64,000 nt of DNA from Hypanus sabinus (GCF_030144855.1 NC_082719.1:69564001-69628000), one strand, 5' to 3'; shown: positions 1 to 40,380, numbered from the stretch's first letter. Notes: generated by a model from the letters alone, not told the origin. Made by a program: numbers and translations.

Positions 1-389
1 ATCTGCTCCTATATATTATGGGCATAATCTAAGGTTTTCCAACATGCAGGATCTGCTCCAAATCACACAACATCTTGATTTGGAAATATATCACTGCTAC
101 TTTTTCCTTCCTGGATCTGAATCCTAGAAAATGTAGACTGTAGGATGCACAAAACCAAATCTCCAATGTTTCTGCCTGTGTTGTCTAAGCCTGCAACCGA
201 GGAAACATGGACTGGATAGGACATCATCAGTTGCAATTTAGTGAAGTATCTGCAGTGAAATGTAATAGTGAAACTGTCTTATGTGCTCTTGTGAGAGGAA
301 GTCTAGAGTCTCTCCACAGCTTCAGCAAGCTACAACTTGGGTCTTTAGGTGAATGGGTGTCACAGTAAGAAAAAAAAATGTCCTGATAC

Positions 390-668
390 CGTGGGTATCA
401 CGGTAGCTATTTCAACTTGAGACATTGGATTTCAATTCAGGTGTCCACTGTAAGGAGTCTCTGTATGACCTCCTTGTGGAATGAATTAGTTTTCCTGGGT
501 GCTCTGATTTCTTCACAGAGTCCAAAGATGTACTGGGCAGGTTAATTGGTCATGTAAATTGTTCTGTAATTAGGTTAGGGTTAAATCAGGGTTCTAGGGT
601 TTCGCTGAATTGGCATGGCTCAGAGGTGACAGATGGGCCTTCTCCATGCTGTATCTCTAAATAAATAA
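390..668 (+). mobile_element. V-SINE/HE1-like SINE, degenerate
   Basis: V-domain-like gggtgctctgatttcttcacagagtccaaagatg; CR1-like 3' end and aaataaataa tail. Confidence 0.6.
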
Positions 669-834
669 GTTTAAAAAGTGGAGTTTATTCTCATTCTTAT
701 TTATTTCCATTCTGTGCAGGGTCAAGAATTTAATGACTTTGTTAATGAGTCAGTTGCCCATTCAGTTCTACCCACCTCAGCTGAGATTGTATAGAATATA
801 TTCAGAGCGACCTGCAACTGTCAAACCATAAATT

Positions 835-1345
835 GACCAACATTGGCCGGTGCTATCATGTTTGCTGTTGTGTGCTGGGGCAGCAGGCTGAGGGTAGCAG
901 ACACCAACAGAATCAACAAACTCATTCGTAAGGCCAGTGATGTTGTGGGGGTGGGACTGGACTCTCTGACGGTGGTGTCTGAAAAGAGGATGCTGTCCAA
1001 GTTGCATGCCATCTTGGACAATGACTCCCATCCACTCCATAATATACTGGTTAGGCACAGGAGTACATTCAGCCAGAAACTCATTCCACCGAGATGTAAC
1101 ACTGAGCGTCATAGGAAGTCAATCCTGTCTGTGGCCATCAAACTTTACAACTCCTCCCTCGGAGTGTCAGACACCCTGAGCCAATAGGCTGGTCCTGGAC
1201 TTATTTCCACTTGGCTTGATGAACTTATTTTTATTTAATTATTTATGGTTTTATATTGCTATATTTCTACACTATTCTTGGTTGGTGCGGCTGTAACGAA
1301 ACCTAATTTCCCTCGGGATCAATAAAGTATGTCTGTCTGTCTATC
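835..1345 (+). mobile_element. Rex1/Babar-like LINE 3' fragment, copy-A specific
   Basis: ORF 843..1187 (VVCWG...HPLH...TERHRKS...AIKLYN); aataaa plus (gtct)n tail; absent near 17425. Confidence 0.8.
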
Positions 1346-1949
1346 TTAAAACAACCACTCATTATATCTAATATAAAAATGTTAAGCCAAAATATTCACA
1401 AAATGTGTTTGAGGCTAAAGGCAAAAAGCCAGTTGTGATGAAACTCCTTAGTTATAAACTCAAGTCTTCCTGTGCCTCTGAGAACTGAATTTGTTTTCTT
1501 TTAGAAGGATTAATGGATTTATCATTCACATCCTACATTACAAGAGCTGTGGTAAGCGACTGCCCTTCTTCCATTTTCTAGCTGCATGGCATCTGGCACC
1601 ATTCTTGTAAATATTCCCAGGCAGAAAGTTGCAGGAAATGGCACATTTTCCTTCTGCATTGAACAAACACTGAAATCTCCAAAATAATATCTCTTCAGGT
1701 GTTCTTAACTCTCATCTACATTCCACCCCTTGGTGACATCAATGACAACACACAGGTTCCACGATACCTTGCCCTCTCCTCTACCACCCCAACCTAACCC
1801 TTTGCGTCTCTATTTTGAAAGGATGTCAGGAAAAGCAGAAATATCCTTTATTAAATATGGGATACTGATGCCATTGTTTTCAATCCTGTTGCTGAGGTAG
1901 AAGATTAACCATAATGTACTGAAAGGTAGAGCAGGCAAGAGGGGATTCA

Positions 1950-2139
1950 AAATTCAGTTCAAAGTAAAGTTATTATCAAAGTATACAAATATCACTGTAC
2001 ACTACCGTGAGATTCATCTTCTTGCAGCATTCACAGTAGAACAAGGAAATACAATAGATCAATGAAAAATTACACAGAAACAAAGACTGACAAATAACCA
2101 AAATACAAAACAAGAAAACTCTGAAAATACAAGAAAAAC

Positions 2140-2170
<31 letters not shown>

Positions 2171-2655
2171 GTTAAAAAGATACTGAGAACGTGGGTTGTA
2201 GAGTACATGAAAGTGTGGCCATAGGTTGTAGAATCAGTTCAGTGTTGAGGTGAGTGAAATGATTTTCATTGGTTCCGGAGCCTGACGGTTGAAGAGTAAT
2301 AACTGTTCCCGAACATGGGGGGATTAGTAAGAGAGCATGGCCTGGATGGAGGTGGTCTTGTGGATGGAAGTTGCTCTGCTTTCTTATGGCAGAGCTACTT
2401 GTAGATGTGTTTAGTGATGGGGGTGGCCTTTCCTGCAATGGACTGAGCTGTATCCACCACATTCTATTGGATTTTCCATTCTTGGACATTGGTGTTTTCA
2501 TAACAAGCAATGATGCAACCGGTCAGGATACTCTCTACTGTGCATCTGTTGAAGTTTGCCCAAGTTTTAGACAACATGGCAAATCTGCACAAACCTCTGA
2601 GAAAGTAGAGCCACGGCCATGCTTTCTTTGTAATGGCACGTACATGCTGGTCCTG
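1950..2655 (-). mobile_element. Decayed Rex1/L2-like LINE 3' end
   Basis: Minus-strand remnant (LYFLRGL..F...TNFNRC...HPGHAL) with A-rich 3' UTR; paralogous remnant at 17515-17865. Confidence 0.55.
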
Positions 2656-2713
2656 GGATAGGGATAAACGTATGATGATCCTTTGCCACTGTCATGAACC
2701 ATGCAGCTCACAC

Positions 2714-2727
2714 GAGAAACGGAAACT
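2714..2727 (-). promoter_or_regulatory. Consensus ISRE (AGTTTCCGTTTCTC), copy 1
   Basis: Matches AGTTTCNNTTTCYC; lies in a block about 97% identical between the duplicates. Confidence 0.4.
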
Positions 2728-3067
2728 CAACACCCAACAGATCAACTGGCAATGTGCATGAGAGGCCAGTGCTCAATGTGACAGATTTAATTGGCCAATG
2801 GGGCCTTTCAGGGTATAGAAAATGTGGATGTTTGGTTTACATAATTTTGAAGGAGTAGGCCATACAGTCATTAATAAGGTCACAGCTGAATGTTTAGAGT
2901 GCTGACACTTCCTTACACAATCCCCATATTTTTCAACTCCCTAATATCCAAAAGCCTAGCAACTTATTATTATCACTATCTAGTGTGAAATGAAATACGT
3001 TGTTTTGCATCAGCACTGCACTGCAAAAATATAACATCACAATTAATTACATAATAAATATAGAGTG

Positions 3068-4400
3068 CGATTGGTTATGGCACACATCAACCATAGCCTA
3101 CTGGTCAACCCTGACGCTTTGCAATTCACCTACTGGAGCAACAGGTCAATGGCAGATGCCATCTCTCTGGCACTACACTCTTCCTTAGAACACCTGGAGA
3201 ATAAAGATGTATCTGTAAGGCTCTTTTTCATTGACTACAGCTCTGCCTTTAATACCATCATTCCAAATAAACTGATTCCTAAGCTCTGGAACCTGGGTCT
3301 TAGCACTCAGATCTGCAGCTGGATCTTCAACTTCCTCACAGACAGGACCCAGGCTGTAAAAATAGGGGACAAGCTCTCCTCTACAATCACTCTGAGCACT
3401 GGTGCCCACAAGGCTGTGTACTTAGCCCCCTGCTGTACTCACTGTACACCGATGATTGTGTGGCCATGATTGTGATTCAATCGAACTCAATATATAAGTT
3501 TGCTGCTGACACCACAATTGTAGGCTGTATCTTGGGTAATGATGAGTCTGAGTACAGAGAGGAAATTAAGAACCTGGTGGCATGGTATGAAGACAATAAC
3601 CTATCCCTCAACATCAGCAAGACGAAGGAATTGGTTGTTGACTTCAGAAAGAGTAGCGGACCGCACGACCCCATCTACATCGGTGGTGCACAGGTGGAAC
3701 AGGTCAAAAGCTTTAACTTCCTCGGGGTGAGTATCGCAAATGACCTGACTTGGTCTAACCAAGCAGAGTCCACTGCCAAGAAGGCCCACCAGCGCCTTTA
3801 CTTCCTGAGAAAGCTGAAGGAATTTGGCCTGTTCCCTAAAACCCTCACTAATTTTTATAGCTGCACCATAGAAAGCATTCTTCTAGGGTGCATCACAACC
3901 TGGTATGGAAGTTGTCCTGTCCAAGACTGGAAGAAGCTGCAGAAAATTGTGAACCTAGCCCAGTACATCACACAAATCAATTTTCCATCCTTGGACTCAC
4001 TTTACACCACACGCTGTCAGAGCAGTGCTGCCAGGATAATCAAGGACACCACCCACCCAGCCAACACACTTTTTGTCCCTCTTCCCTCTGGGAGAAGATT
4101 CAGGAGCATGAAGATTCGTACAGCCAGATTTGGGAACAGCTTCTTTCCAACTGTGATAAGACTGCTGAATGGACTCTGCCCTGGATCTGGGCCGTACCTT
4201 CCAAATATCCGGACCAGACTTGCACTACCTTACTTTCCCTTTTCTATTTTCTAATTATGATTTATAATTTAAATTTTTATTCTATTTACTTCAATTTGTA
4301 CTCCAGGGAGCGCAAAGTGCAGAATCAAATATCGCTGTGATGATTGTATGCTCTAGTATCAATTGTTTGGTGACAAAAAAGTAAAGTGTAAAGTATAAGT
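3068..4400 (+). mobile_element. Rex1/Babar LINE, 5'-truncated, frameshifted RT
   Basis: ORFs 3065..3469 and 3460..4254 ([35 protein letters not shown]); (gtaaa)n-like tail; absent in copy B. Confidence 0.9.
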
Positions 4401-4414
4401 ATAATCTAAAAAAC

Positions 4415-4835
4415 TTACTGCATCAGAGCCTGGTGTGGAAGCTTCAGTGCACAGGTACAAGGCTGCAAAGGGTTGCAGATACAGCCAGCTCCTTCACAGG
4501 CACAGCCCTCCCCACCATCTAGGAGATCTTCAAAAGGCAGCATTTGCCACTAAGCACTCTGAGCATCCAGGACATGCCCTCTTCTCATTACTGCCATCAC
4601 TGAGGAGGTACAAGAGCCTGTAGACCCACTCTCAACAATTTAGTAACAGCTTCTTCCCCTCTGCTATCAGATTTCTGAACATTCCATGAACCCATCCACA
4701 AGACCTCGTCATTTTATTTTTACACACTCTATATTTATTTTGTAATTAATTGTAATGTTATGTTTTTACAGTGCAGTGTTGATGCAAAACAACGTATTTC
4801 ATGTCACAAAAGATAGTGATAATAAACCTGATTCT
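4415..4835 (+). mobile_element. Decayed Rex1/L2-like LINE 3' end
   Basis: [19 protein letters not shown] motif; paralog at 18200-18575. Confidence 0.6.
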
Positions 4836-6206
4836 CATTTGTTTTGAATGTACTGAACCTTTGGGCGCCATCATTCCTCTTGGCCAGAGAATTCCAGAAA
4901 CGTGCTATTCTCTGGTGAAGAAATTTCTCACTGTCACTGTCTTGAATAATATGACACTAATTTTGAGACTGAGGACTTGTTTTGCAATTCTCAGCCAAGG
5001 GAAGCATAAGTCCTTATGTATATCCTCTCAAGCCTGGTAAAAGTTTTGCATATTTCAATGTTTTATAATTTAATTTTCAAGAGAGTGAAAGTCCAATATG
5101 CTTAACCTCTCCATGTTTAACAAACTCACCATTTCAGAATCAATCCAGCGAATCTTTGCTTTATCTGCTGTTCTTTCCTTCCACCTCAGTGATGTCCTTT
5201 TATCTTCCACATTGTATTCCATCTGCCATGTCATTCTACATTCAATTAGCCTGAAGCTCCCTGGTCTCCTCTGCACAGCCCATAGTGCTACCTAAGCCTT
5301 TATTATAATCAAATTTGGATATGTTGTTCCTGCTCCCCTCATCCAAATCACTGATATATTTTATTGAAAGATACAAAGACTCACTAAGATACTAATGATG
5401 ATTTACAATGACTAACTAAGCTACTAACTGGTACATCTTTGGACTGTGGGAGGAAACTGGAGCAAGTGATGAAAACCCATGAGTACTCAGGAAGGAAAGT
5501 ACAAACTTGCTTACAGAGGATGTGGGAATTGAAATATGAACACCAATGACCCAAGATGCAATGACAAGATGCAATTTCTATCTGTTAATCAATTCATCTC
5601 AAGATCCAACAACATAAGGAAATAGGAAGAGGGGTATGCCACAATCTTACCTTGGCTGAGAATTGCAGAACAAGTACTCAGTCTCAAAATTAATGTCATA
5701 TATGATTCAATATAATCATAGCAGGCCTGTCACTGTCCTCATTCCCCTTCTGCAGCAATTCTCCAGTTGACCCTCTGTTCCCTGATGATTCAAATAATAA
5801 TGCACACTGCCTCTTTAAATACTCCCAATGATCCTGGCTCTACAACTCATCAGAATATCAGTGTTACACACACAAAGTACTGGAGGAGCTCAGAAGGCCA
5901 GGCAGTAACTATGGAAAAGGGTATTGTCAACCCTAATGTGTGTCCTGCCGAAGGGGCTCAGCCTGAAATGCCAACAAACTCTTCCATAGATGCTGCCTGG
6001 CCTGCTGAGTTCCTCCATCACTGTGATATGGTGTTCTTTTTGGGTTTATTTTGAGTATGCTCTCTTGTGATCTATTTTCCCTATCAGTGTAAACCTCACA
6101 CTGATAACAGTTTCAAACATTGAAGTGTGATTCCACAAAATTCACATTCAGAGATATGTAGGTGAATCAGCCAACTTGATGCCTTCATCTAATAAAGCAC
6201 ATAAGG

Positions 6207-6212
6207 TTTATT
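6207..6212 (-). terminator. Candidate polyadenylation signal, gene 1
   Basis: AATAAA about 195 nt after the stop; conserved in the gene 2 paralog. Confidence 0.5.
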
Positions 6213-6407
6213 TGTTATTTGCAAAATTATTACAGCAAAAAAAAATCATTTTCCTGCTTGAAAATATGCACAATTTTTCCATAGAGACAAGGGCTTTGAA
6301 CCACAATGTCTGTAAAATTGAAACGTAAAGATTATTTTTAATTCCAGAATAGCAGTGAGCTACAGAAGACATAATCATGAAGAAAACACAAGTATTTTTT
6401 GTAAGAT

Positions 6408-6560
6408 TTAATCTGTTAGTTTCTGAATCCACTGAATATATTCTTCTGTGATCCTTGTATAGACACCAGGCTTTTTGGGAAGTCCACAAGTTTTTTTATA
6501 TCCAAAGGATACAATTCCTCTGAGTTGCTTGTTACAAACCAGTGGTCCACCTGAATCTCC
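6408..6560 (-). CDS. Gene 1 exon 5 (GDSGGPL catalytic Ser to TAA)
   Basis: ttttag|GGAGATTCAGGTGGACCACTG; translates [50 protein letters not shown]. Confidence 0.95.
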
Positions 6561-9500
6561 CTAAAATAACAAGAAAGATAGATTACTGGAAGATTGTTGG
6601 AATCTCTTATCCTCTTAGCTCCACTCTGCCATCTTCTCCCCATAACCCCTGACGCCCACACTGATCAAGAATCTATGAACCTCCTCCATAAATATACTCG
6701 ATGACATAGCTTCCACATCTGTCTGAGACAGTCAATTCCACAGACTAACCATCCACTGGCTAAAGAAAATTCCTCAACATCTGTGTTTGAAAGGGACTTC
6801 CTTGTATTCTGAGGCTGCACCCAGACTCCCCCACTATAGGAAACATCCTCTACAAGTCCAAACTATCTAAGCTGTTCAGTATTCAATAGGTTTCAATGAG
6901 ATCCTCATTCTTCTGATAGATTCAGTTTGATAAAATCTATTAAGCAGCCTCATAGTGCCAGAACAGATTGAATCTGAGCTTGCATAGAAGACAATTCTAA
7001 TTATGTTCAGTTATTGCTACCATACTTTTTTCAATCCAACTTACAAAGCATGCATCTCTCCCTTCCTTTTTGTCGCCAGCACAAAGCATATTCTCAGTTA
7101 TTAAGGGCTGGTGGTCGTAATACTTCCGACTGTTGCACTTTTTTCTGTCTATGATGGTTACGTTTGCTTCTCTGAGGCAATCAGATGCTTTGTCTGAGTT
7201 TGATTTTGTTGCTCCCCATCCCGCAACCGTGCAGACCGTTTGGTCTTTCAAATCCGAAGCCTCTCGTGGCAGTGGTAGAAGGCCCACATACTCATTAAGT
7301 TTTGCCTCAGACTCCAGCTGTAGTAAACAAAAGCATTGGTTTTCTCTTATTTCTGCACATAAAATCTCTAGCATGTTAATTTATTTATTTTAATTTAACG
7401 ACACAATGTGGAGTAGGCCCTTTTGACCCTTTGAACCATGACAACCCACCAAACCCTAAAACGTATTCTTAAATATTCTGCGAAGAATATGTTGGTGCAT
7501 GCAACAGGACAGTTATTTGCTCTGGGGAGATCACACAGTATTAAGTATGCCTCCTTCTAATGATCAAGAAACCAGTTGAAAATGGTCAGAAATCCAAGCA
7601 AACATTAAAATAAATGTAGAACATGTGTATTTTTCGTTCTGTCCACTTTCACAGCTCATCTGTAATATCCACCTGTCCTTCCCAGAGGTGCCCTCAGGCC
7701 TAGTAAGTGCCTGCAGCATTCTCCTACTTTTCTTTCAGAAAAATGAGAAAGTCTGCAGATACTGGAAATACAAAGCAACACACACAAAATGCTGGAGGAA
7801 CTCCAGAGGTCAGGCAGCATGCATGGCAATGAATAAACAGTTGATGTTTCATGCTGAGACCCTTCATCAGGGCTGAAAAGGAAGGGGGAAGATGCCAGAA
7901 TAAAAAGGCGGGGGGAGGGGAGGAAAGCTAGCTGGCAGGTGATAGATGAAGCCATGTGGGGGGGGACGGGCTGGCCCAGGAATCTGATAGAAGAGGAGAG
8001 TAGACCACAGGAGAAAGGGAAGGAGGAGGGGACCCAGGGGGAAGTAATGGGCAAGTGTGAAGAAGTGGGATAGAAAAAGACGGGAGTGGGAAGGGAATGG
8101 CTTACTTGAAGGAGAAATGGAAAAGGAGTGGGTATCAGAATTAAGATGTTTGGCTGCTGGGAAGTATTGCTTTTGGTGGATGGAGCAGAGATGCTCGACA
8201 AAGCAGGTCTCCAATTTATGATGGGTCTCACCAATGTAGAGAAGGCCGCATTGAGAGCAATTGAGAGCACCAGGTACAATAGGCAGCCCCAGCAGATTCA
8301 CTGGTGAAGTGTTGCCTCACCTGGAAGGACTGTTTGGCACCGAATGGAGGTGAGGAAGGAGATGAATGGCGGATGTAGCACTTAGGTCACTTGCAGGGAT
8401 AAGTGCCGGGAGGGACAGATGGACAAGGGAATTGTGGAGGGAGCAATCCCTAAAGAAAGTGGACGGGGGAGAGGGATCTCTTTGGGAAGGCAGAAGCTGA
8501 GGAGGATTCCATGTTGGATGTACAAGCTGATGGGTTGGTAAGCAAGGACAAGGGGAATTCTACTACTGTTAATGTGGCAGGAAGATGGGATGAGTGCTAA
8601 TGTTCAGGAAATGGAGATGCATGTGACGGCAGCATCATAGTGGAGAGAGTGAAACACCACTCTTTGAAGAAGGAGGACGTGAAAGCGAAGCCATATCCTG
8701 GATACAGATGCAGCAGAGGTGGAGGAACTGAGAAAATGTTTTTACAAGAGACTGGGTTGGAAGAGGTATAGTCAAGTTAACCATGGGACTTGGTAGGTTT
8801 ATAAAAGATGTCAGTTGACAGTTTGTCTCCAGAGATGGAGACAGAGAGATTGAGAAAGAGGAGGGAGGTGTCAGAAATGGACCAAGTGAATTTAAAGACA
8901 CGGTGGAAGCTAGCAGCAAAGTTGATGAAATTGACAAGCTCATCATGGGTGCAAGAATCAGCAACATCACAGTCGTAAATGTAGCAGAGGAAGAGTTGGG
9001 GAGAATTGCTAGGGAATGCTTTGGAATATGAACTGTTCTATTAACCAATGAGGAGGCAAACATAGCTGCGGATTCATGCGGGTGCCCATGGCTACCCCTG
9101 AGTCTGGAGAAAGTGGGAGGAGCTGAAGAAAAAAAATCTGAGGGTGTGGACCAGTTCTGTCAAACGGGGAACTTTGAATTTTGTTTAGCTTCTTGAATAA
9201 TTTTATTTCTTCATGAATTGAATAATCTGCAGAGCATAATTTTCTGCTTCCAATTCAGACTTTGCATCTTATGAATATTAAAATGACTTATTGATTTGTT
9301 ACTTTACCCTCAGAGTAACATCTTTTTCCCTTTAAGTGAAAACCCTTTCTTTTCCTGTGATGCGACAGCTTTGTGTGATCAGTTCGTAGGTTAGTACATC
9401 AGCTCTTACTCGTAGAAGGGATTTAAGTCATCGGTGAAAGGCTCGTGGGGGATGGGGGTGTGGCACACAGAAAACTGAATGTGTGGAGTCTGCACCCAGT

Positions 9501-12500
9501 TTACAACGTCAGATTTTAGTGATCGTCTTGGAGGCAGAAATGTACAAAGGACACAAGCGGGTGGGTCAAAGCTGATCAGATGGCGGCAGCTACATCACAC
9601 CCACTGCTGATGAGAACATGCGCCTTGAACAGCAATGGCATCCACTTGGGACTGAGAACACCAGGAGCAAGCGTGCCTCCCACACAGAATTACTGGGGGC
9701 GCTCTGCTGAACATTTGCCTCTCGCAGCTGTAGCATTAAAGTGTGCAAACAAAGGAGCATGAAGTGGTGATTACACAGTTTTAAGTTAACCACTATTAAT
9801 CTCGGGAGGTTAAAAGATTTTGATTGGGTAAATCAAAATAACATGGCGAAGGAATGAATGAAACAGGACTTGTGGATTGATTTGAAAATTTCAATAAATA
9901 ACGGGATTTTACTGGGTTGGGAGCTCCTTATACAACTGGCCAGTGTCTGGAAAATAAATAAACTTCAGCCTCTTAAGTAAACAGGAACAGTAAAAAATAA
10001 AATAATTCATTTTTTTGATAGAGAGCAAATACAGAGGTAATGAAAATTACTCCTGAACACTTGGGACTTCAGCATTGCCAGATTAACAGACATTGACAAG
10101 TTGTTTTTGTTATTCCCTCGCTGCCCCCCCAACACACATTTTAATTTCTTTGCTTTAGTAGTTACATAGAATCATAACACATTTTCCAGTGAACCAGGTA
10201 ACGAAGAGAACATGTGGACTGGGACCCAGGTAAGTAGGAAGTGTGGATACCTTTAAACTTTTAGGAATTTGTTTTAATAACAGACTCACATGGTCAACAC
10301 ATATTAAGGAAATAATAACCAAAAGTAAGAAAGTTCTAAATGTTATGAGTTGTTTAATAGGAAAGGAATGGGATTCTGATTGGAAATCCTTGTAAGCAAT
10401 ATATATAGGATTAATAAGATCAGTACTGGACTATGAAAGTATGGTGTATCATCAGCTCAAGAAAGTTCAAGGTCAAACACTAAGGTTAATCAGTGGGGCA
10501 GTAACCACACCAATGGTGGCAATGCAGTTGAAGTGGGGAGACACACCTCTGGAACTGAGGAGAACGCAGCTTGCATTAACCTATCGGACAAACCTACAAG
10601 GGCACAGAGAAACTCATCCAACTAAACAGTTTTTACATCCATGCTGGAGAAAGGAATGAAAGAAAATCAGGAGCTTTGCATGGACTATTGCAGAAAAAGC
10701 AGAAAGAGCAAGAATAAGGCTGTGAGTGCTACGCTGCCTTTCCCTGGGGTGCCTCCACGGCTGTGTGAAGCACTGGGGTGGACTTCCACAAGGAGACAGA
10801 AAAATAGAGAAGTGGTTTTAAATGAAGAGAGGTTGAATTTGGTGAGCCAGTTCTTGAAGCATGGGGATATCTGAATGGTCAGAAAGCAGTTTATTATGGT
10901 CTAACATTTCGGGACCTGAACTTAGATAGATTGCTCCCTTTGTGTTATAATACAACATGGATTACTATAAATAATCAGTCACTTACTTGGAGTAGCATGA
11001 TGTCATTTTCTTTGCTTTTAATGTCAAAACACTCATGTGGAATTTTATACTTCACATTCAATACTTGCTTCGAGGTTTCATTACTTCCCAATGAATCAAT
11101 TCCAAGAACCACACGGACTTGATTTCGTTTAAAGCCACTAAATAAAACATTTTTAAAATGTGGAGAGGATGGATTATGTTGCAAGCAGTTTATTATATCA
11201 TCTGCTTTAAAATGTGTGAGAATTTGGAGACTTTTGAGAGAATTCGAAGTGATTATAGTTATAAACACATAATGCTTGTTAAAGCTCAATTGACCCTTGT
11301 TTGTGATTGAGGAATGCAATGCTAAAGTTTACGTGACTAGGAATTCGAGTCTACTGTAAGGTGGCCACAGGAATGCTGAAAGTGTGTTGGGGCAGCACGC
11401 ACTTTGCGTGCAGTTCCAGTGTGAAAAGGTTAAAAAGTGACGGAGTTTGGAGACCTTGGCCTCACATTATGAGCAGTTGTAAATTCATGCACGTTACAGT
11501 GTGACCCTTAGATTCCCCCTGCTATATTCTTTCCCAACCACTTGAGTAATTTATTGCAGAAAAGGAAAACACAAATATTGCATAGTGTGTCTAATGGAGC
11601 CTTCTGTTTGAGCCTGTTAAGTTCATTTTGATAGGGTCAGGGATTCTATTTCTTGTATTATTTAAGCGGATGCCTGATTAGTGCTAATAGCAGGGTCCTA
11701 GTTTAGAGAATGTAACTTCTTGAGACGTCACTCGGCCAGGCCACTGATGATCTTTGGGAATTGTTATGAATAAAACTCTCATCGCCATTTCTACATCAGA
11801 GTACTGTCTTCCCACTGCATTTGGGTTCCAATATTGCCAGCACACATCATGATGGAAGGATCCTGCCAAATACTAGACCCAGCGAAGATTGAACAGCGAC
11901 TTTTTGATATCGGTGGCTGGAGATGGAGGGTGCCTTCTATTCCCAGGACGTATCCTGAGTTTATATTCCGAGTGTCCCATGTCTACGTACGAAGCTTCTC
12001 TAGTCTATATTTCTGACTTTCTCCAGTCTCCGTTCTGAGCTTCTCAAGTCGTGAGTGTCCAGTTTCCCAACTTCGGGGACCCTTGACTCCCGTAGGCATT
12101 GCAGTTGAGCACTTTAAGCAGGCTTTGCAATAAAATTTGTTTGATTCAACAAACCAACATTCAATTTAACAGTATAAATTTTGGAAATGTAAAACATTAT
12201 GATCAACCTCCTTCCAAGATCCTTCCCTAGGTTTTGATTTCACGTTTCCTGGGTCCTGACAGTTCTTTCTGGGTCTAAGTATCTCAGCCAAAGTGTTCAA
12301 GGTTCTCAAGGACTTTTCAAGGTCGTCAAGGATCTCAAGGTTGTAAGTGCTCCCCGAAGACTTCTAAGATTTTCCAGTGTTTTTCAGTGTTTTTAAGGTT
12401 TTTTCACATCCAGAAGTACTGGAGGAACTCCACAGGTCAGTCCGCATCTGTGGCAGGAAATGGTCAGTTGATGGCTAGGGTCGAGACCCCTCATCTGGAC

Positions 12501-15175
12501 TCACTCTAGTCTAGTCCAGATGAAGGGATTTGACCAGAAATGTTGACTGTCAATTTCCCTCAGCTGCAGATGCTCCCTGACCTGTAAGGTTCCTCCAGCA
12601 TTTTGTGTGTCGCTCCATTTTCCAGCTTCTGCAACCTCTTGTGTTGTGATTGCTTGTGATGAAGTAAGACAGATTTTCAAAGGAACTGACCACAATGTTC
12701 CAGGGAAAGACAGCCCCTGCCCAATGGTCAGTGAGTGTGGTTTTGGTTTGCATGAAGTCTAAGATACTAACAATAATTTTCTGGAAGAGGCAAGAAGACT
12801 GTAGAAAAATGAAATATAGGTGTCGGTGATCCAAAGGTGTGATAGAAGAATTAAGAATAAATTCCTCACTACTTGGATTCAGAAACCAGTTAGTGAAATT
12901 GGTACAACACACACAAAATGCTGGTGGAACGTAACAGGCCAGGCAGGATCTATAAGGAGAAGCACTGTCGGCGTTTCAGGCCGAGACCCTTCATCAGGAC
13001 TAACTGAAAGGAAAGATAATACGAGATCTGAAATTAGTGGGGGGAGGGGGAAATGCAAAATGATAGGAGAAGACTGGCGGGGATGGGATGAAGCCGAGAG
13101 CTGGAAAGGTGATTGGCGAAAGTGATACAGAGCTGGAGAAGGGAAAGGATCATGGGACGCGAGGCCTCGGGAGAAAGAAAGGGGAGTGGGGGGCACCAGA
13201 GGGAGATGGAGAACAGGCAGAGTGATGGGCAGAGAGAGAGAGAGAGAAAAAACAAATAACTAAATATGTCAGGGATGGGGTAAGAAGGGGAGGAGGGGCA
13301 ATAACGGAAGTTAGAGATGTCAATGTTCATGCCATCAGGTTGGAGGCTACCTAGCCGGTATATAAGGTGTTGTTCCTCCAACCTGAGTGTGGCTTCATCT
13401 TGATAGTAGAGGAAGCAATGGATAGACATATCAGAATGGGAATGGGACGTGGAATTAAAATGTGTGGCCACTGGGAGATCCTGCTTTCTCTGGCGGACTG
13501 AGCGTAGGTGTTCAGTGAAACGGCCTCTCAGTCTGCGTCGGATCTCACCAATATATAAAAGGCCACACCGGGAGCACCGGACACAGTATACCACACCAGC
13601 CAACTCACAGGTGAAGTGTCGCCTCACCTGGAAGGACTGTCTGGGGCCCTGAATGGTGGTGAGGGAGGAAGTGTAAGGGCAGGTGTAGCACTTGTTCCGT
13701 TTACAAGGATAAGTGCCAGGAGGGAGATCGGTGGGAAGGGATGGGGGGGACGAGTGGACAAGGGAGTCGCGTAGGGAGCGATCCCTGCGGAAAGCAGAAG
13801 GGGGGTGAGGGAGGGAAAAATGTACTTGGTAGTGGGATCCCGTTGGAAATTGGTGTTTCCTCAGCATGCTAGCTCCTCTTATTGTAGTGTGTCAGAAGAG
13901 ATGTTAGCTGCTCTAATTATATAAGAGATGTAGATTAACTATGTAAATGCTGGAGCCGATTAGAAAACTGAGAAATGCCAAGAAAGGATGGTCTGATAGA
14001 AGATGGTACACACCCACACATCATCAAAGACCGTGGGAAACTAACAAATTACATTGAGTGAAAAAGGAAATGTAAATTATTAAGATATATTGTCGTATAC
14101 TATAATTATAACTTACAGATTGCAGTGTGCTGCAGTCAGAATCCAAGATGGCTTTATTAACACTCCTCCACACATATGCTGTCCTTTCATCTGGATTGAT
14201 GCCATGTATGGTTTGGAATGATTTCTCACTTTTTTGCCCCCAATGATTTCTGAGCAATCACCTTTTAAAGCAAACAGAGGTTAATGCCTGTGAGGAAAGG
14301 CTCAAAGACAGAGAGGATAGTAACAGAGACGACATGCTTGATGCTGAGTCTAACAGCTCCCTACAGTTGCTATCAGAACATGTTGCTATTACCTGCACCT
14401 CCCTCTAGCCTCAATGTCGGCTGTGAGAGGGTGTAAAGGAGCAGTTAATTAATCACTGACATGGCCCCCAGGGAGGGAGAAATATGATAGTGGTGAAGGT
14501 TAATGACTTGAGGAAAATTATTTTGAGGTTAGTAGTTCCCCCTCCTCTTGGCACCAATGGGAGACAGATACCAGCATTTCCCAGCCTGAGCCTTTCCTGT
14601 CCTGAAGTCACTTTCCACAGATAGTCTCATGGAGAACTTGTCTGTTCCCAGGCTTCAGTCCAATGTTCCAGGTAGACACTGATGACAATCAGTGAAAATG
14701 TGGAATCAGAGAAATTATATAATGGGTAGCAAATTCAATATTGCTTGTTTAATACCTTCTCCAAATTTCAAATTATACCCAAGAGAATTACATCTGTCTG
14801 TCAGTTGTTCATTACTCCTCAAGGAAATAAAACTCTCTTGTTGCATCTTAGCAAGTAGATTTACAGGAACTTTAACACTGAGTCACATTTACCTCATAAA
14901 TTCCATTAAGTTTGTTATTTGTGCTAAAACATGTGTTTAAACGAGAAACAAAACTGCAAGGAAATAAATATTGGCATAAATATGACTGAAAAATATGTAT
15001 CAGACATTGAAAATATGAGGCTAATTATTGTAAACAATATTCAATATATACATCAGCAACTAAACATCAATAACATAAATCCTAATATAAAGTTTAATTA
15101 TTCCTTAATTTACTTACTGGCTGGGCTGAAGGAGACGGCAATCAAAACAAACAGACTGAGCTGCAAAAAGTTCAT
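6408..15175 (-). CDS. Granzyme A/K-like tryptase, gene 1 (259 aa; exons 15175-15118, 14261-14117, 11137-10987, 7317-7045, 6560-6408)
   Basis: Spliced [31 protein letters not shown]...LTAAHC...NDIMLLQL...[14 protein letters not shown]...KKPGVYTRI...LTD*. All introns are GT-AG with phases 1,2,0,0, as in granzymes. Asp189/Gly216/Gly226 give trypsin-like specificity. The PHECF Cys matches the GZMA dimer Cys. A versus K orthology is not resolvable by eye. Confidence 0.93.
7045..7317 (-). CDS. Gene 1 exon 4 (CTVAGWG...MLCAG...RDACF)
   Basis: Within ORF 6997..7374; ctacag acceptor and GTAAGT donor. Confidence 0.95.
7740..9170 (-). mobile_element. Penelope-like element, degenerate (RT C-terminus, GIY-YIG and hammerhead-like end)
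   Basis: GVAMGTRM motif near 9080; [12 protein letters not shown] in ORF 7867..8301; absent from the gene 2 intron. Confidence 0.85.
10200..10840 (+). mobile_element. I-clade (Nimb/Ingi-like) LINE fragment
   Basis: IRSVLDYE...LRLISGA..TTP...PLELRR; its continuation in the paralog carries RNase H. Confidence 0.55.
10987..11137 (-). CDS. Gene 1 exon 3 (catalytic Asp, NDIMLLQ)
   Basis: Within ORF 10975..11319; ttttatttag acceptor and GTAAGT donor. Confidence 0.95.
12410..12650. mobile_element. Penelope-derived fold-back short element
   Basis: Inverted arms ctggaggaact...ttcctccagca around a degenerate hammerhead core. Confidence 0.65.
12904..13845 (-). mobile_element. Young 5'-truncated Penelope-like element (GIY-YIG endonuclease) with 9-bp TSD
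   Basis: ORF 13034..13867 ([24 protein letters not shown]). GAAATTGGT is duplicated at 12895-12903 and 13846-13854; the empty site is at 31196-31204. Confidence 0.92.
12965..13002 (-). ncRNA. Minimal type I hammerhead ribozyme motif (U16.1>C variant)
   Basis: GTC-CTGATGA-AGGGTCTCGGCCT-GAAA-CG-CC-GAC on the minus strand, at the Penelope terminus. Confidence 0.6.
14117..14261 (-). CDS. Gene 1 exon 2 (DCSEIIGG...LTAAHCN; catalytic His)
   Basis: AG acceptor, [37 protein letters not shown] donor. Confidence 0.95.
15118..15175 (-). CDS. Gene 1 exon 1 (signal peptide [19 protein letters not shown])
   Basis: Hydrophobic ORF ending in a phase-1 GTAAGT donor; TATAAA lies 40 nt upstream; in frame with exon 2. 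Confidence 0.85.
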
Positions 15176-15210
15176 TATGGCTGTTCTCGAGCTCATTGTC
15201 AAATTTTCAG

Positions 15211-15260
15211 GTAATTTATATTAAACTCAAAGGGATGTGGTTTCTTCACTTTGATGTCAT
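15211..15260 (-). promoter_or_regulatory. Gene 1 proximal promoter (TATAAA, RUNX site, CRE-like site)
   Basis: TATAAA at 15220-15215 (-); TGTGGTTT at 15236-15243; TGATGTCA at 15252-15259. Confidence 0.65.
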
Positions 15261-15899
15261 TGTTACAAAGATCAAAACATGTTAACACCTATAATGTGAC
15301 ACTAAAAACCAGAACAAACAGACTGAGGAACCCAGAGCTGTGGCCTCCATCACACCACTCCCACAGAACAATGACAAACTGTGAGCACACACAGGGACTC
15401 AAATACTTGCACTAACGGCACTTTGTGCATTACTGTGATATTCTGGTGCTGCTGCAACTTATTTTTTGCTACTTATCTATTTAATACTTTTTTTTTATTA
15501 CTGTCTTGTTTTTATCTACTGCTTTATTTAATTGCCTGAGAGGAAGCTAAACAGAGTTTCATTGTACCTATGTATAATGACAATAAAGATCATTCAAGAT
15601 GCTGCCTGGCCTGCTGAGGTCCTCCAGCATTTTGTGGGTGTGGGGATACCTATTCCGTTATGAAAAGCCACACAACAGGGTCAATACTAACCAGAAAACT
15701 ATAACTATTAGCTTGAGACTTGTTTAAAACTTTGAACTCTATCACTTAATATGTTGTTTGAAGTGGCATAGTTATATTTCTCACATTGCATCAGTTATTC
15801 CACATTGAGTATTGGTGGCAAATAAATAGTGTGTAGGTCATCAGGTATTCCGACATACAGGATCTGCTCCAAATCACACAACATCTTGATTTGGAAATA

Positions 15900-16086
15900 C
15901 GAGGAAATCTGCAGATGCTGGAAATTCAAACACACACAAAATGCTGGTGGAACACAGCAGGCCAGGCAGCATCTATAAGGAGAAGCACTGTCGATGTTTT
16001 GGGTCTCGGCCCGAAACGCCGACAGTGCTTCTCCTTATAGATGCTGCCTGGCCTGCTGTGTTCCACCAGCATTTTGTGTGTGTTGT
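15900..16086. mobile_element. Penelope-derived fold-back element with 14-bp TSD
   Basis: Near-perfect ~65-bp inverted arms; TSD ttgatttggaa(a/g)ta; empty site at about 76-89. Confidence 0.85.
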
Positions 16087-16584
16087 TTGATTTGGAAGTA
16101 TATCACTTCTACTTTTTCTTTCCTTGATCTGAATCCTAGAAATTACTCCTGCTTGAAATGCAGACTGCAGGATGCACAAAACCAAATCTTCAGTGTTCCT
16201 CCCTGTGTTTGCTAAGCCTGCAGCCAAGGAAAGACGGATTGAATGATAATGTCCTGCTAAAACATCATCAGCTGCAATTTAGTGAAAAACCTGCAGCGCA
16301 ACATAGAAGTGAAACTGTCTTAAGTTTCTTAACTGTCTTAAGTTGACGATGTGAGAATTCCTCCACATCTTCAACAAGCTGCAACTTCGGACTTCGGGTG
16401 ACTGGACCCCCGAGTAGGAACTAGACAATGAGAAAAAATGGCCTGATCACACTTGGGTATCACGGTAGCTATTTCAGCTTGGGGCATTGGATTTCAGTTC
16501 AGGTGTCCTCTGTAAGGCGTCTCTGTATGTGCTCCCTGTGGAACGCACTGGTTTTCCAGGGGTGCTCCAGTTTCTTTCCATAGT

Positions 16585-17125
16585 TTACAGTTCTGGTCAC
16601 CGAATTATAGGAAAGATATCAGCAAAATAGAGAGAGTACAGAGAAGATTTACTCGAATGTTAACTCGGTTTCAGCACCTAAGTTACAGGGAAAGGTTGAA
16701 CAAGTTAGGTCATTATTCTTTGGAGCGTAGAAGGTTGAGGGGGGACTTGATAGAGGTATTTAAAATTATGAAGGGGATAGATAGAGTTGATGCGGATAGG
16801 CTTTTTCCATTGAGAGTAGGGGAGATTCGAACAAGAGGACATGATTTGAAAGTTAGGGGGCAAAAGTTTAAGGGTAACACGAGGGGGAATTTCTTTACTT
16901 AGAGAGTGATAGCTGTGTGGAATTAGCTTCCAGTAGAAGGGGTAGAGGCAGGTTTGGTTTTGTCATTTAAAGTAAAATTGGATAGGTATATGGACAGGAA
17001 AGGAATGGAGGGTTATGGGCTGAGTGCGGGCCAGAGGGACTAGGTGAGAGTAAGCATTCGGCATAGACTAGAAGGGCCGAGATGGCCTGTTTCCGTGCTG
17101 TAATTGTTATATGGCTATACATGGT
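16585..17125 (+). mobile_element. CR1 LINE 3' end inserted in a V-SINE, copy-B specific
   Basis: ORF 16657..16902 (LSYRERLNKLGHYSLERRRLRGDLIEVFKI); (atggttat)-like tail. Confidence 0.88.
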
Positions 17126-17948
17126 TCAAAGATGTATTGAGTAGGTTAGTAGCTCGGTGATTAGGTTAGGGTTAAATCGGGGTTGTCGGGACCTGCTGGA
17201 TAGGTATGGTTTGAAGTGCCAGATGGGCCTTCTCCATGCTGTATCTCTAAATAAATAAATACATTTAAAAAATGGAGTTTATTCTCATTCTCATTTATTT
17301 CCATTCTGTGCGGGGCCAAGAATTTAATGACTTTGTTAATGAGTCAGTTGCCCATTCAGTTCTACCCACCTCAGCTGAGATTGTATAGAATATATTCAGA
17401 GTGACCTGCAACCGTCAGACCATAAATCAAAAACAACCCACAATTATATCTGATATAGAAATGTTAAGCCAAAGTATGCACAAAATGCATTTGAGGCTAG
17501 AGACGTAAAGCCAGTAAAAGACAAAAAGAGAAATAACGAAAATGCAAAAGAAGACAAACTGTGAAAATCCAAGAAAAACTAATAATAATAAAAAAATAAG
17601 CAAATAAATAATACGGAGAACATGGTTATAGAGTACTTAAAAGTGAGACTAGTGGTTGTAGTTCAGTATTGAAGTGAGTGAAGTTTTGAGCTTCATTGGT
17701 CCAGGCAATGATGCAACCAGTCGGGATACTCTCCATTGCGCATCTATTGAAGTTCGTCAAAGTTTTAGACGACATGCGGAATCTGCACAAACTTCTGAGA
17801 AAGTAGAGGCACGGCCATGTTTTCTTCGTAATGGCATGTATGTGCTGGTCCCTGAACAGATCCTTTAACATCACATACCTGCTGGTCCTGGGATAGGGAT
17901 AAACGTATGATGATCCTTTGCCACTGTCATGAACCATGCAGCTCACAC

Positions 17949-17962
17949 GAGAAACGGAAACT
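17949..17962 (-). promoter_or_regulatory. Consensus ISRE, copy 2 (about 2.8 kb upstream of gene 1)
   Basis: Identical motif to 2714-2727. Confidence 0.4.
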
Positions 17963-18974
17963 CAACACCCAACAGATCAACTGGCAATGTGTACCTGAGG
18001 CCAGTGCTCAATGTGACAGATTTAATTGGCCAATGGGGCCTTTCAGGGCATAGAAAATGTGGATGTTTGGATTACATAATTTTGAAGGAGTAGGCCATTC
18101 AGTCATTAATAAGGTCACAGCTGAATGTTTAGAGGGCTGACACTTCCTTACACAATCCCCATATTTTTCAACTCCCTAATATCCAAAAGCCTAGTACCTT
18201 ACTGCATCAGAGCCTGGTGTGGAGGCACAGCCCTCCACACCATCTAGGAGATCTTCAAAAGGCAGTTCCTCAAAAAGGCAGCATCTGCTACGAAGCACTC
18301 TGATCATCCAGGACATGCCCTCTTCTCGTTACTGCAATCATCAAGGAGGTACAAGAGCCCGTAGACCCACTCCCAACAATTTAGTAACAGATTCTTCCCC
18401 TCTGCTATCAGATTTCTGAACATTCCATGAACCCATCAACAATGCCTTGTCATTTTTTATGCACTCTATATTTATATTATAATTCATTGTAATGTTATGT
18501 CTTTGCTGTGCAGTGTTAATGCAAAACAACGTATTTCATGTCACACAAGATAGTGATAATAAACCTGATACTCATTTGTTTTGAATGTACTGAACCTTTG
18601 GGCGCCAACATTCCCCTTGGGTGGAAAATTCTAGAAAGTTGCAGTTCTCTGGTGAAAAACTTTCTCCTTGCAACTCTGTTGAGTAACATGATATTCACAG
18701 AACTAAACCAGTGATTCTTTCCTGTATTCTTTTTACTTCAAGGATAACCTTGGTAGAGAGAACAGACCTACACACAATATTCCCAAAGCTGTTTCTTGCA
18801 CTCAATCCTTTTGCAATAAAGACCAATTGCTAACTTTGTCAGTGATCTTTTTAAACACCTTCTTTCAATTGAAAATTATCTGCTGTTCTTTCCTTCTAAG
18901 CCATGTCCTTTCATCTTCCATATTATATTCCATCTGCCATATCCTTCTACATTCAATTAGCCTGAAGCGCACCA

Positions 18975-19180
18975 GCAACGCACAGATTTAACCCTATCTT
19001 AATCACGGGACAATTTACAATGACCAATTCAACTACTAACTGGTACATCTTTGGACTGTGGGAGGAAACCCACGTGCACACAGAAAGAACATATAAACTT
19101 TTGTACGGAAGGATGCTGGAATTGAACTCTGAACTACAATCATATTGTCCTAACCACCATTCTGCAGTGACACCCCACTA
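18975..19180 (-). mobile_element. V-SINE/HE1-like remnant
   Basis: acatctttggactgtgggaggaaacc; paralog at about 5395-5540. Confidence 0.55.
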
Positions 19181-19785
19181 ATATACAGCATCACACACAA
19201 AATGCTGGAGGAACTCAGCAGGCCAGGCAGCATCTATGGAAAAGAGTACAGTTGACGTTTTGAGCCTCCAGCATTGTGTGTGTGTTGCTTGCGTCAGCAG
19301 TTTTTCTCCTGTTTGTGATTGCATGCAGCGTCAATTCATGAGACACCCCACTAGTTATGATCTGTATCAGAAAAGGACCCCTTTATTCTCACTCTTATAT
19401 TTTTATCTGTTAATTAATTCATCTCAATATATAAGAACATAAGAAAATAGGAACAGGGGAATGCCACAAGCCTACAATCAATATAATCATAATGGACGTG
19501 TCACAGGCCTCATTCACCTTCTGCATCAACTCTCCAGTTGACCCTCTATCCCCTGATGATTCAAATAATAGTGCACACTGCCTCCTTAAATACTCCCAGT
19601 GATCCTGGCTCTACAACTCATCAGGATATCAGTGTTTTTTTTTGCTTTATTGTGCTCGCCAGCTCTTGTGATCTATCAATGTAAATCTCACACAGGTAAC
19701 ACTTACAAATCCCACAGAATTCTGATTCAGAGACATGCAAGTAAGTCAGCCAGTTTGATACGTTCATCCAATAGAGCACATAAGG

Positions 19786-19799
19786 TTTATTCATTTATT
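19786..19799 (-). terminator. Candidate polyadenylation signals, gene 2
   Basis: Two AATAAA hexamers about 190 nt after the stop. Confidence 0.5.
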
Positions 19800-19984
19800 G
19801 TAAGATTAATATAGCAAAAACATCATTTTCTGTCTTAAAAGTATGCACAATTTTTCCACATAGAGTAAAGTTATAGACTACGATGTCTATAAACTTAAAA
19901 TGTAAAGACTATTTCTAATTGGCAGAATAGCAGTGATCCACAAAAGACATCATCATGATTAAAGTTCAAGTTTTTTTGTAAGAA

Positions 19985-39017
<19,033 letters not shown>

Positions 39018-39055
39018 TGCAATCAGTTCTGAACAGTAAGCAGATGAAACTGTTA

Positions 39056-39095
39056 TCTATATATAATGAAAGCAACATAATAAGGATGTGGTTAT
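39056..39095 (-). promoter_or_regulatory. Gene 2 proximal promoter (TATA and RUNX site)
   Basis: TATATATA at 39058-39065; TGTGGTT at 39087-39093. Confidence 0.6.
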
Positions 39096-39824
39096 TCAGT
39101 TTGCTCATATATCACCTAATAATTCACAAGCGGCCACATGAGTTGTCAGAAAATTCACATGTGGTACATGGGTCCTGAGGAAAGGCGTTGAAAACAGAGA
39201 AGCTTTTAAGTGCCATCTAGAGTAGTTCAGGTGAATGGAAAAAGTGTTGTGGCTGAAAAGCTAACTGAAGGAGGAGAATAATGGGGTGGAGGACAGGCAC
39301 ATGAAGTGTTTAAGAGATGTGTTCCACATCATACTCATCTCAGAAACAAGGTGGGGTCAGACTATTTTATATTTAATATTTGTGAGAAGAGTTAATTAAT
39401 AACCTTATAGCTAGGGGACCTCCCGGGAGAAGGGATATTCTTTTATTTGAAGATTGAAGATGATTTTGATCAGTCTGAAATTAGAGTATTTAAACCAAAC
39501 GAACTATGATGGTAGCACACACAGACTGCTGGAGGAACTCAGCAGGCCAGGTAGCATCTGTGGAAAAGAGTACAATTGACATTTCAGGCACCTGAAGGGT
39601 CTCAGCCCAAAATATCGACTGTACTCTTTTCCATAGATGCTGCCTGGCCTGCAGAGTTTCTCCAGCATTCTGTGTGTGTTGCTTGGATTTCCAGCATCTG
39701 CCAATTTTCTCTTGTTTGAAATTAGGATGGTGTGAGATTCTGATAACAGAATGGGAAACTACACTGAAATATTTAGCAGTAAAGAAGCAGTGACTAATAT
39801 TTAAAAAATTATTGCAACAACAAA

Positions 39825-40380
39825 TACGTATGGTGGAGAGAGTGAGCAGTTTCAAGTTCCTAGGTGTCAAGATCTTCGAGTATCTAACCTGGTCCCAACA
39901 TATCGATGCAGTTATAAAGAAGGCAAGACAGTGACTATACTTCATTAAGAGTTTGAAGAAATTTGGTATGTCAACAAATATACTGAAAAATTTCTATAGA
40001 TATACCGTGGAGAGCACTCTGACAGGCTGCATTACTGTCAGGAACGGCAAGGAGTGGGGGTGAGGGCTACAGACAGCCATAAAATTATTCAGCTCCACCT
40101 TGGGTACTAGTGTCCATAATGTCCATGGCATCATCAAGGAGAGGTACCTCAGGAAAGTGACATCCATTTTTAAGGACCCCCCATCACCCAGGTTATGCCC
40201 TCTTCTCATTGTTACCATCAGGAAGGAAGGAGGAAGGACTAAAGCCTGAAGGCATATACGCGCTGATTCAGGAACAGTCTCTTCCTCTCTGCCATAAGAT
40301 TCCTAAATGGACATTGAACCCATGAACACTATTTCACTATTTTTAAATATATATTTCTGATCTTGCACTATTTTTTAATC
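39825..40380 (+). mobile_element. Rex1/Babar-like LINE 3' fragment
   Basis: VERVSSFKFLGV...WSQHID..IKKARQ.LYFIK.LKKFG read on the + strand. Confidence 0.7.

Follow-up and report, generated by a model that had tools for sequence, protein, structure and literature searches.

How did two neighbouring granzyme genes whose protease exons match each other closely come to begin with different promoters, different leaders and first introns of very different length? The locus that raises this question lies in the genome of Hypanus sabinus (GCF_030144855.1 NC_082719.1:69564001-69628000); we call the 64,000 nucleotides that were analysed, given 5' to 3' on one strand, the window. It comprises three minus-strand genes of the granzyme A/K type, each of them intact, which we refer to as genes 1, 2 and 3. 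A preliminary description of this DNA had attributed the difference between genes 1 and 2 to an unequal crossover in intron 1. We assign a probability of roughly 0.9 to the reading that gene 1 is a chimera, formed by a tandem duplication that would have joined the promoter and leader of a K-like granzyme gene to the protease of an A-type gene. Judged from DNA alignments and trees, gene 1 is chimeric, and gene 2 retains the ancestral A-type first exon and long intron. The gene models are as follows.

15175-15118, 14261-14117, 11137-10987, 7317-7045 and 6560-6408, minus strand: exons of gene 1; intron 1 is 856 bp
15118-15175, minus strand: gene 1 exon 1, 58 nt, ending in phase 1, with a K-type leader of 19 residues
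6408-14261, minus strand: gene 1 exons 2-5 and their introns, an A-type protease body with His57, Asp102, Ser195, Asp189 and Cys93
39017-38957, 31593-31449, 26580-26430, 23160-22888 and 20131-19985, minus strand: exons of gene 2; intron 1 is 7,363 bp
38957-39017, minus strand: gene 2 exon 1, 61 nt, ending in phase 1, with an A-type leader of 20 residues
31594-38956, minus strand: gene 2 intron 1, 7,363 bp, ancestral in length and content
19985-31593, minus strand: gene 2 exons 2-5 and their introns, an A-type body
56428-56365, 52227-52068, 50436-50274, 47991-47725 and 46296-46147, minus strand: exons of gene 3, the reference paralog outside the swap
46147-56428, minus strand: span of gene 3, by exon identity to P0214

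All three genes have five exons with GT-AG splice sites, uninterrupted frames and intron phases 1-2-0-0, and in each a separate first exon carries the leader. The catalytic triad His57/Asp102/Ser195 is present throughout (motifs AAHC, DIMLL and GDSGGP). Asp189, six residues before Ser195, is also found in each gene (DACF/GDS, DACS/GDS and DSCQ/GDS in genes 1, 2 and 3), and its position at the base of the S1 pocket predicts tryptase specificity for all of them. Genes 1 and 2 differ at residue 192 (Phe and Ser, respectively) and at two residues of the 217-220 loop. Exon 4 of each gene matches the Pfam Trypsin family (PF00089, E 1e-18 to 1e-17; gene 1, E 2.9e-18). The solved structures most similar to exon 4 of gene 2 are those of granzyme A (E 4e-27) and pro-granzyme K (E 1e-25); complement factor D is the next family (8e-12). 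An extra cysteine, Cys93, is the mark of the A type and forms the dimer in human granzyme A (PMC4646688). Genes 1 and 2 both have Cys93, nine residues before Asp102 (HECF....ND), and it is absent from gene 3 and from the K-like proteins P0152 and P0184. By this residue the bodies of genes 1 and 2 are granzyme A type, with a predicted capacity to form dimers. Each exon of gene 3 is 100% identical to P0214, a granzyme K-like protein of Hypanus sabinus.

Genes 1 and 2 are colinear from their 3' flanks to 75 bp upstream of exon 2. In a chained self-alignment, 75-14336 pairs with 16087-31668 in 22 blocks of 71-100% identity (73-92% in the large blocks), interrupted by numerous insertions and deletions in either copy. 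The match is closest at its upstream end, where 144 of 145 positions of exon 2 and 72 of 75 positions of the intron 1 tail are identical. Homology then stops abruptly (gene 1, 14336; gene 2, 31668): across the next 84 bp upstream only 28 of 71 positions agree, which is the random level. The 5' region of gene 1 gave no alignment to the upstream region of gene 2 beyond shared transposon copies. With gene 3 there is an alignment of 472 bp at 61% identity (E 4e-21), which pairs 56055-56510 with gene 1 14821-15259, a stretch comprising the promoter, exon 1 and 300 bp of intron 1. The colinearity, the abrupt stop, the intron 1 sizes, the two leaders and a gene 1 promoter nearer to that of gene 3 than to that of gene 2 had all been described before, and we recovered each of them, with positions shifted by at most 3 bp.

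We used the sawfish Pristis as the outgroup, aligning the DNA of its granzyme locus (L002) to the reverse-complemented window. The order of genes in L002 is the gene 3 ortholog, an A-type gene and a K-like gene. In the A gene, intron 1 spans about 8 kb between exon 1 (near 9968-10027) and exon 2 (18002-18145). The K-like gene follows 3.3 kb past the A stop codon; its exons 1 and 2 occupy 28564-28620 and 31178-31342, and L002 contains no third gene between it and the A gene. An outgroup without the chimera thus has the two parental types side by side and facing the same way.

Gene 2 follows the Pristis A gene throughout. Its promoter is colinear with that of Pristis A (window 39513-38947 with L002 9452-10035), and the correspondence continues through the 7.4 kb intron 1 and over the breakpoint (31843-31018 with L002 17734-18596). 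Gene 1 behaves differently on the two sides of that point. Window 15297-14335, which covers its promoter, exon 1 and start of intron 1, aligns with the K promoter, exon 1 and first ~880 bp of intron 1 at L002 28442-29497 (73.5% over 1,065 bp, E 0). Window 14332-13846 aligns instead with the last 73 bp of the A intron 1, exon 2 and intron 2 at L002 17929-18427 (79.3%), the intron tail itself corresponding to L002 17929-18001. In a four-way alignment, gene 1 tracks Pristis K to ...GCATCAAGCATGTCG and then gene 2 and Pristis A from TCTCTGTTACTATCC. The joint reads ...GCATCAAGCATGTCG / TCTCTGTTAC... and shows microhomology only, with few bases in common. DNA alignments, trees and an approximately unbiased (AU) test agree on one switch point, with a 5' part orthologous to the K parent and a 3' part orthologous to the A parent. 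The segments around it are these.

14337-15117, minus strand: K-derived part of gene 1 intron 1, 781 bp, colinear with L002 28621-29497, without a match in gene 2
14332-14336, minus strand: switch from K-derived to A-derived sequence, resolved to ~5 bp by the four-way alignment
14262-14336, minus strand: A-derived tail of gene 1 intron 1, 75 bp with the acceptor, equivalent to gene 2 31594-31668

The opposite polarity, in which gene 2 would be the derived copy and would have replaced a first exon like that of gene 1 by a foreign one lying 7.4 kb upstream, might be suspected from its unusually long intron 1, which has several transposon copies inside. Pristis A has a matching intron of ~8 kb that is colinear with that of gene 2, and the A promoter is 88% conserved. 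Furthermore, the gene 2 leader type, M.FQALF.S.MIIYFLTPG, is carried by the A-type genes of sawfish, sharks and chimaera and resembles the leaders of tetrapod granzyme A. We regard this alternative as scarcely credible. We also found no orphan granzyme exons in gene 2 intron 1 or in the spacers of the window, which rules out a deleted gene between exons 1 and 2 of gene 2.

The same split between leader and body is seen in proteins. Relatives were gathered by an exon 4 search of protein representatives, which led to Mobula P0005, and then by a word search with P0005. (The P0005 model itself joins K-like exons 1-2 to an A-type exon 4 over 71 kb and is apparently wrong.) Three proteins of Hemitrygon akajei proved informative for gene 1:

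P0151: leader and body both of gene 1 type
P0154: leader and body both of gene 2 type
P0152: leader nearly that of gene 1, body distinct and K-like (YGVEIIGGREVK..., C-terminus ...YNVTAEDLY)

Exon by exon, gene 1 shares the following numbers of residues with P0152, P0154 and P0151, respectively:

Exon 1: 18/19, 2/19, 17/19
Exon 2: 30/47, 44/47, 46/47
Exon 3: 20/50, 42/50, 49/50
Exon 4: 46/91, 74/91, 77/91
Exon 5: 29/50, 40/50, 46/50

The gene 2 leader matches 17 of 20 residues both in Hemitrygon P0154 and in the gene 2 half of a Mobula model described below. The gene 1 leader type, MKSLQHTLF.SLIAVSLTPA, is carried by the K-like genes of skates and sharks.

We built a maximum-likelihood tree of the bodies from exons 3-5 (57 proteins, 190 columns). 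Gene 1 orthologs fell within the A clade beside gene 2 orthologs (99/94), with Pristis A as their sister (100/97), and the K-like genes formed a separate clade (99/97). Forcing the gene 1 bodies into the K-like clade cost 132.9 log-likelihood units and was rejected (AU p = 5e-8). In a tree of the leaders, which has 20 columns and is weak in detail, gene 2 grouped with A-type leaders that included those of shark, chimaera and tetrapod granzyme A (Shimodaira-Hasegawa approximate likelihood-ratio support 99), and the gene 1 leaders fell among K-type leaders. The leader and body trees, like the per-exon identities, set exon 1 of gene 1 at odds with its exons 3-5 rather than in congruence with them. 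The preliminary description was right that the promoter and leader came from another granzyme; the donor is the K-like lineage (Hemitrygon P0152, Hypanus P0184) and not gene 3. "K-like" is the NCBI name. A weakly supported group in the body tree unites tetrapod A and K with gene 3 and the A clade and leaves the K-like clade outside, and the C-terminal extension ...YNVTAEDLY of this lineage has no counterpart in mammalian granzyme K.

We propose that a tandem duplication of ~11.6 kb (in sawfish coordinates) would account for this arrangement. One end would lie in intron 1 of the A-type gene that is today's gene 2, 73-75 bp 5' of exon 2. The other would lie ~0.8-0.9 kb into intron 1 of the neighbouring downstream K-like gene. 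The resulting order would be A gene, chimera, K gene, and the chimera would consist of the K promoter, exon 1 and intron start followed by the A intron tail and exons 2-5. Because the joint shows microhomology alone, we infer that the exchange was illegitimate, either as unequal crossing-over or as replication template switching. The earlier proposal of an exchange in intron 1 that joined the promoter and leader of one granzyme to the protease of another thus stands, but not as recombination over long homology.

Such a duplication would also copy the spacer between the A and K genes. The A-to-K spacer is indeed present in duplicate, with one copy on either side of gene 1:

15822-19984, minus strand: spacer copy 1, from gene 2 to gene 1, colinear with L002 25257-28441 and with window 9-6407
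9-6407, minus strand: spacer copy 2, the 3' flank of gene 1, colinear with L002 25070-28219, leaving the window at its left end
15900-16086, no strand assigned: 187-bp palindromic mini-element, in spacer copy 1 only, with TTGATTTGGAA(A/G)TA on both sides

The two copies can be aligned to the left edge of the window when the 187-bp insertion is skipped (window 32-88 corresponds to 15843-15899, and 75-130 to 16087-16142). The mini-element appears as a clean insertion of a palindromic mobile element with a target duplication of ~14 bp, TTGATTTGGAA(A/G)TA; its kin lie at 34046-34283, 36199-36318, 39516-39739 and 52576-52727. The upstream parent, gene 2, flanks the chimera in the window, and the K-like parent would lie beyond it. 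Window 32 corresponds to L002 28219, 345 bp ahead of Pristis K exon 1, and in the paralogous alignment window 9 corresponds to 15822, 647 bp from the gene 1 ATG. On these two grounds a K-like first exon would be expected ~0.35-0.65 kb to the left of the window. A K-like gene, P0184, is annotated on the same Hypanus sabinus contig outside the window, in a model that begins at exon 2 without the leader exon and is apparently wrong.

The extent of A-derived sequence bears on another explanation, in which gene 1 would be a K-like duplicate whose exons 2-5, introns and 3' flank were overwritten by A-type sequence through long-tract gene conversion. Conversion has been active in this array. Exon 2 and the intron 1 tail (14117-14336 versus 31449-31668) differ at 4 of 220 positions, whereas the neighbouring intron sequence differs at 26 of 253 (Fisher p = 1e-4). 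A 306-bp patch of the spacer (2661-2968 versus 17896-18201) has a distance d of 0.033, compared with 0.15-0.22 elsewhere. The distance of the converted patches to sawfish is ordinary, and later gene conversion among the copies is evident from these comparisons. However, the A-derived stretch exceeds 14 kb and runs through the spacer to the next promoter-proximal region, which is far more than known conversion tracts cover and is exactly the extent that a tandem duplication predicts. Gene 1 also has one sharp switch point without a second boundary. Long-tract conversion as the origin of gene 1 is highly improbable, and we retain the tandem duplication.

The chimera is not young. In Hemitrygon the order gene 3, gene 2, gene 1 is conserved with spacings similar to those in the window, and intact orthologs of the chimera are present in both Hemitrygon and Mobula. 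In segments that look free of conversion, the distance d between genes 1 and 2 is 0.15-0.22, or 64-75% of what separates each of them from Pristis A. The description of these genes as recent paralogs does not survive this comparison. The chimera arose after the split from sawfish and probably before the split between Mobula and Dasyatidae.

Several points weigh against this account of the origin and age of gene 1. The K parent is outside the window, and the sequence to the left of the window could be a relic. Annotation shows no gene within 10 kb of Hypanus P0184 in either direction, and in Hemitrygon the 10 kb downstream of gene 1 and the 10 kb upstream of the K-like gene are likewise free of called genes. 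Support for one origin that predates the separation of Mobula and Dasyatidae is weak (94/46 and 92/49), the AU test does not reject a duplication specific to Mobula (p = 0.225), and patchy gene conversion blurs the dating. The use of both first exons rests on RefSeq models, and in H. sabinus RefSeq fuses genes 2 and 1 into one 498-amino-acid product whose coding sequence starts at 39017. The evidence behind that annotation thus did not keep the two genes apart.

The dating results bear on whether the chimera arose once, in an early myliobatiform ancestor, or separately in the Mobula lineage and in Dasyatidae. Besides the AU test, in which a clade of Mobula gene 1 and gene 2 survives, separate origins would fit the residues that gene 1 and K-like leaders share within each species (...IAISFTP in Mobula, ...IAVSFIPA in Hemitrygon) and the existence of an independent chimera with a different breakpoint in Heptranchias. 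The best tree nevertheless groups each of the two genes with its counterparts from the other species, and the three rays are alike in breakpoint intron, gene order and propeptide (DCSE). The shared leader residues could equally well stem from conversion, at a later time, between the K-like gene and gene 1. Separate origins are unlikely, and a single early origin is the reading that we carry forward.

The fused RefSeq models raise the question of a prediction artefact, in which one first exon would be unused and genes 2 and 1 would form a single read-through unit. Mobula has such a model too: P0267, a 518-amino-acid "uncharacterized protein", joins a gene 2 ortholog to a gene 1 ortholog, and the same two leaders recur in it. 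This model reads through the gene 1 leader, which shows that the exon is intact there. The Hemitrygon RefSeq annotation has two separate genes with the two leaders, and RefSeq models from the three species together use both first exons. Gene 2 has its own stop codon with AATAAA signals ~190 bp after it, and the promoter, ATG, phase-1 donor and leader of gene 1 are conserved against Pristis K at 82-86%. We consider a read-through unit very unlikely; the 498- and 518-amino-acid fusions appear to be annotation errors, and genes 1 and 2 are best treated as separate genes. Trees built from such fused or truncated models would misplace these granzyme genes.

We compared the proximal promoters of genes 1 and 2 with those of their respective parents in Pristis:

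15176-15297, minus strand: gene 1 proximal promoter, K-derived, with ACCACA (RUNX-like) at 15241-15236 and TATAAA at 15220-15215
39018-39100, minus strand: gene 2 proximal promoter, A-type and ancestral, with ACCACA at 39092-39087 and TATATATA at 39065-39058

Non-coding DNA around the promoters is ~73% identical to Pristis, and the comparison spans ~0.3 substitutions per site. Over the 100 bp before the ATG, gene 1 is 81.6% identical to the Pristis K promoter and 57.9% identical to gene 3, and gene 2 is 88.2% identical to the Pristis A promoter. Exon 1 of gene 1 is 86% identical to Pristis K exon 1 at the DNA level. The ACCACATCC motif and the TATA box are retained in both genes relative to the Pristis promoters, and by these comparisons both promoters look functional. 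The same motif and a TATA box occur at similar spacing in genes 1, 2 and 3, which disagrees with the earlier characterization of the promoters as unrelated.

In these genes the signal peptide is divided between two exons: exon 1 supplies its hydrophobic core and nothing else, and its end is encoded by exon 2 together with the propeptide (DC/SE, followed by IIGG). Since exon 1 contributes only the hydrophobic leader and both first introns are in phase 1, the swap would leave the mature protease unchanged. As predicted from the exon structure, the swap altered solely the promoter, 5' untranslated region and leader, and the mature enzyme is untouched. Mammalian GZMK and GZMA are linked and are expressed in partly different cell types (PMC8129556). 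We infer that gene 1 is transcribed from a K-type promoter; its product, an A-type tryptase with Cys93, would then appear at the sites and times of K-like gene expression. Gene 1 has intact orthologs in three genera, which argues for a functional gene. Protein evolution is faster in gene 1 than in gene 2 (terminal branches of 0.13-0.15 versus 0.05-0.09), and the ratio of nonsynonymous to synonymous differences per site (pN/pS) between them is ~1.3 in exons 3-4.

Two blocks on the gene 2 side stand out in the comparison with Pristis A. Positions 35207-35398, in gene 2 intron 1, and 39720-39826, ~0.7 kb 5' of the start, are 84.5% and 84.1% identical, respectively, over a background of ~73%. Both may be shared repeats, or else regulatory elements of the A type that were not passed on to gene 1.

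Other features of the window lie within the second introns. A 277-amino-acid open reading frame at 13034-13867 on the minus strand, in gene 1 intron 2, has a weak GIY-YIG match (E 0.0015) that falls under the Pfam cut-off. It fits a remnant of a Penelope-like element and is missing at the equivalent position of gene 2, where the alignment chain has a 942-bp gap. Gene 2 intron 2 contains a G+C-rich satellite at 27365-30489, with 89 copies of a 35-bp unit at 91% matches (consensus TCTACCTTCCCAGCGTACGCCCTGACCCTCTCCGA). The satellite is not present in gene 1, and the alignment of the window with the sawfish A gene has no matching block. An Rfam scan at the gathering threshold detected no RNA families in the window.

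A second case of mixed A and K parts comes from the sevengill Heptranchias perlo. P0153 (L001:1-27838; CM068637.1:64389143-64416980) is a compact gene of 7.8 kb. Its exons 1-2 are K-like, with a leader 100% identical and an exon 2 89% identical to P0156, and its exons 3-5 fall in the A clade (95/86). By its sequence P0153 is an independent chimera or the product of 5' conversion, with the putative switch in intron 2. L001 1-10624 repeats 14071-27838 at 94.6-98.2%, which places the P0153 chimera in a young tandem duplication, and a further K-type exon 1 lies 9.4 kb downstream. We also considered Mustelus asterias P0201, which combines an A-type leader with a K-like body, as a reciprocal chimera. 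We rejected it because its model spans 52.6 kb and is probably misjoined.

The arrangement of gene 1 resembles two well-studied cases. In the anti-Lepore haemoglobin genes and the laurasiatherian beta/delta-globin chimeras (PMC4041002), same-orientation tandem paralogs also underwent a misaligned intragenic exchange. Both parents were kept there, as proposed for the stingray locus, with the chimera between them, the 5' part from the downstream and the 3' part from the upstream gene, and conversion followed. Gene 1 differs from the globin fusions in that its switch lies in the first intron and the mature protein is wholly that of one parent. In addition, the stingray parents are very divergent (2/19 identical residues in the leaders), and the joint shows microhomology and not homologous recombination. 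The CYP11B1/CYP11B2 chimera of glucocorticoid-remediable aldosteronism (PMC2923798, PMC8750845) likewise places an enzyme body under the regulation of a neighbouring paralog, through an unequal exchange that leaves, as proposed for gene 1, a third gene between two intact parents. That chimera is a recent human disease allele produced by homologous misalignment, whereas gene 1 is fixed and intact in three ray genera, and any ectopic expression of gene 1 is a prediction.

The vertebrate granzyme A/K locus provides the context for these genes. It is ancient and expanded in cartilaginous fish, with five genes reported in the elephant shark (PMC4646688, PMC8129556), and almost nothing is known about the proteases of cytotoxic cells in cartilaginous fish (PMC4646688). 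As in the window, the published locus contains linked five-exon A and K tryptase genes, with Asp189 throughout and Cys93 in the A-type genes only (PMC4646688, PMC8129556). The papers that we found on it cover whole-gene duplication and divergence, unlike the intron 1 chimera reported here. We found no description of an A/K granzyme chimera or first-exon exchange in the literature. The mechanism is a textbook one, known from the anti-Lepore globins and CYP11B1/CYP11B2, and this granzyme case is a further example. Its general interest is moderate because the mechanism is well known.

For the granzyme family, the two chimeras raise the tentative and rather doubtful possibility that exchange of 5' modules between A and K genes is recurrent in elasmobranchs and rewires the site at which a tryptase is made, with gene 1 having entered a K-type cell programme and gained a new function. 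The ray chimera joins K exon 1 to an A body, and the sevengill gene joins K exons 1-2 to A exons 3-5. Should the K-type promoter be active in other, perhaps perforin-poor cells, as for mammalian GZMK, gene 1 would deliver a dimer-capable A-type tryptase there. If this is true, the faster evolution of gene 1 relative to gene 2 would reflect the new function. In either case, an old, naturally replicated swap of promoter and leader between the two oldest granzyme lineages, with the mature enzyme kept the same, amounts to a natural experiment. What the K-type and A-type proximal regions specify could be read from how ray immune tissues express the K-like gene and genes 1 and 2.

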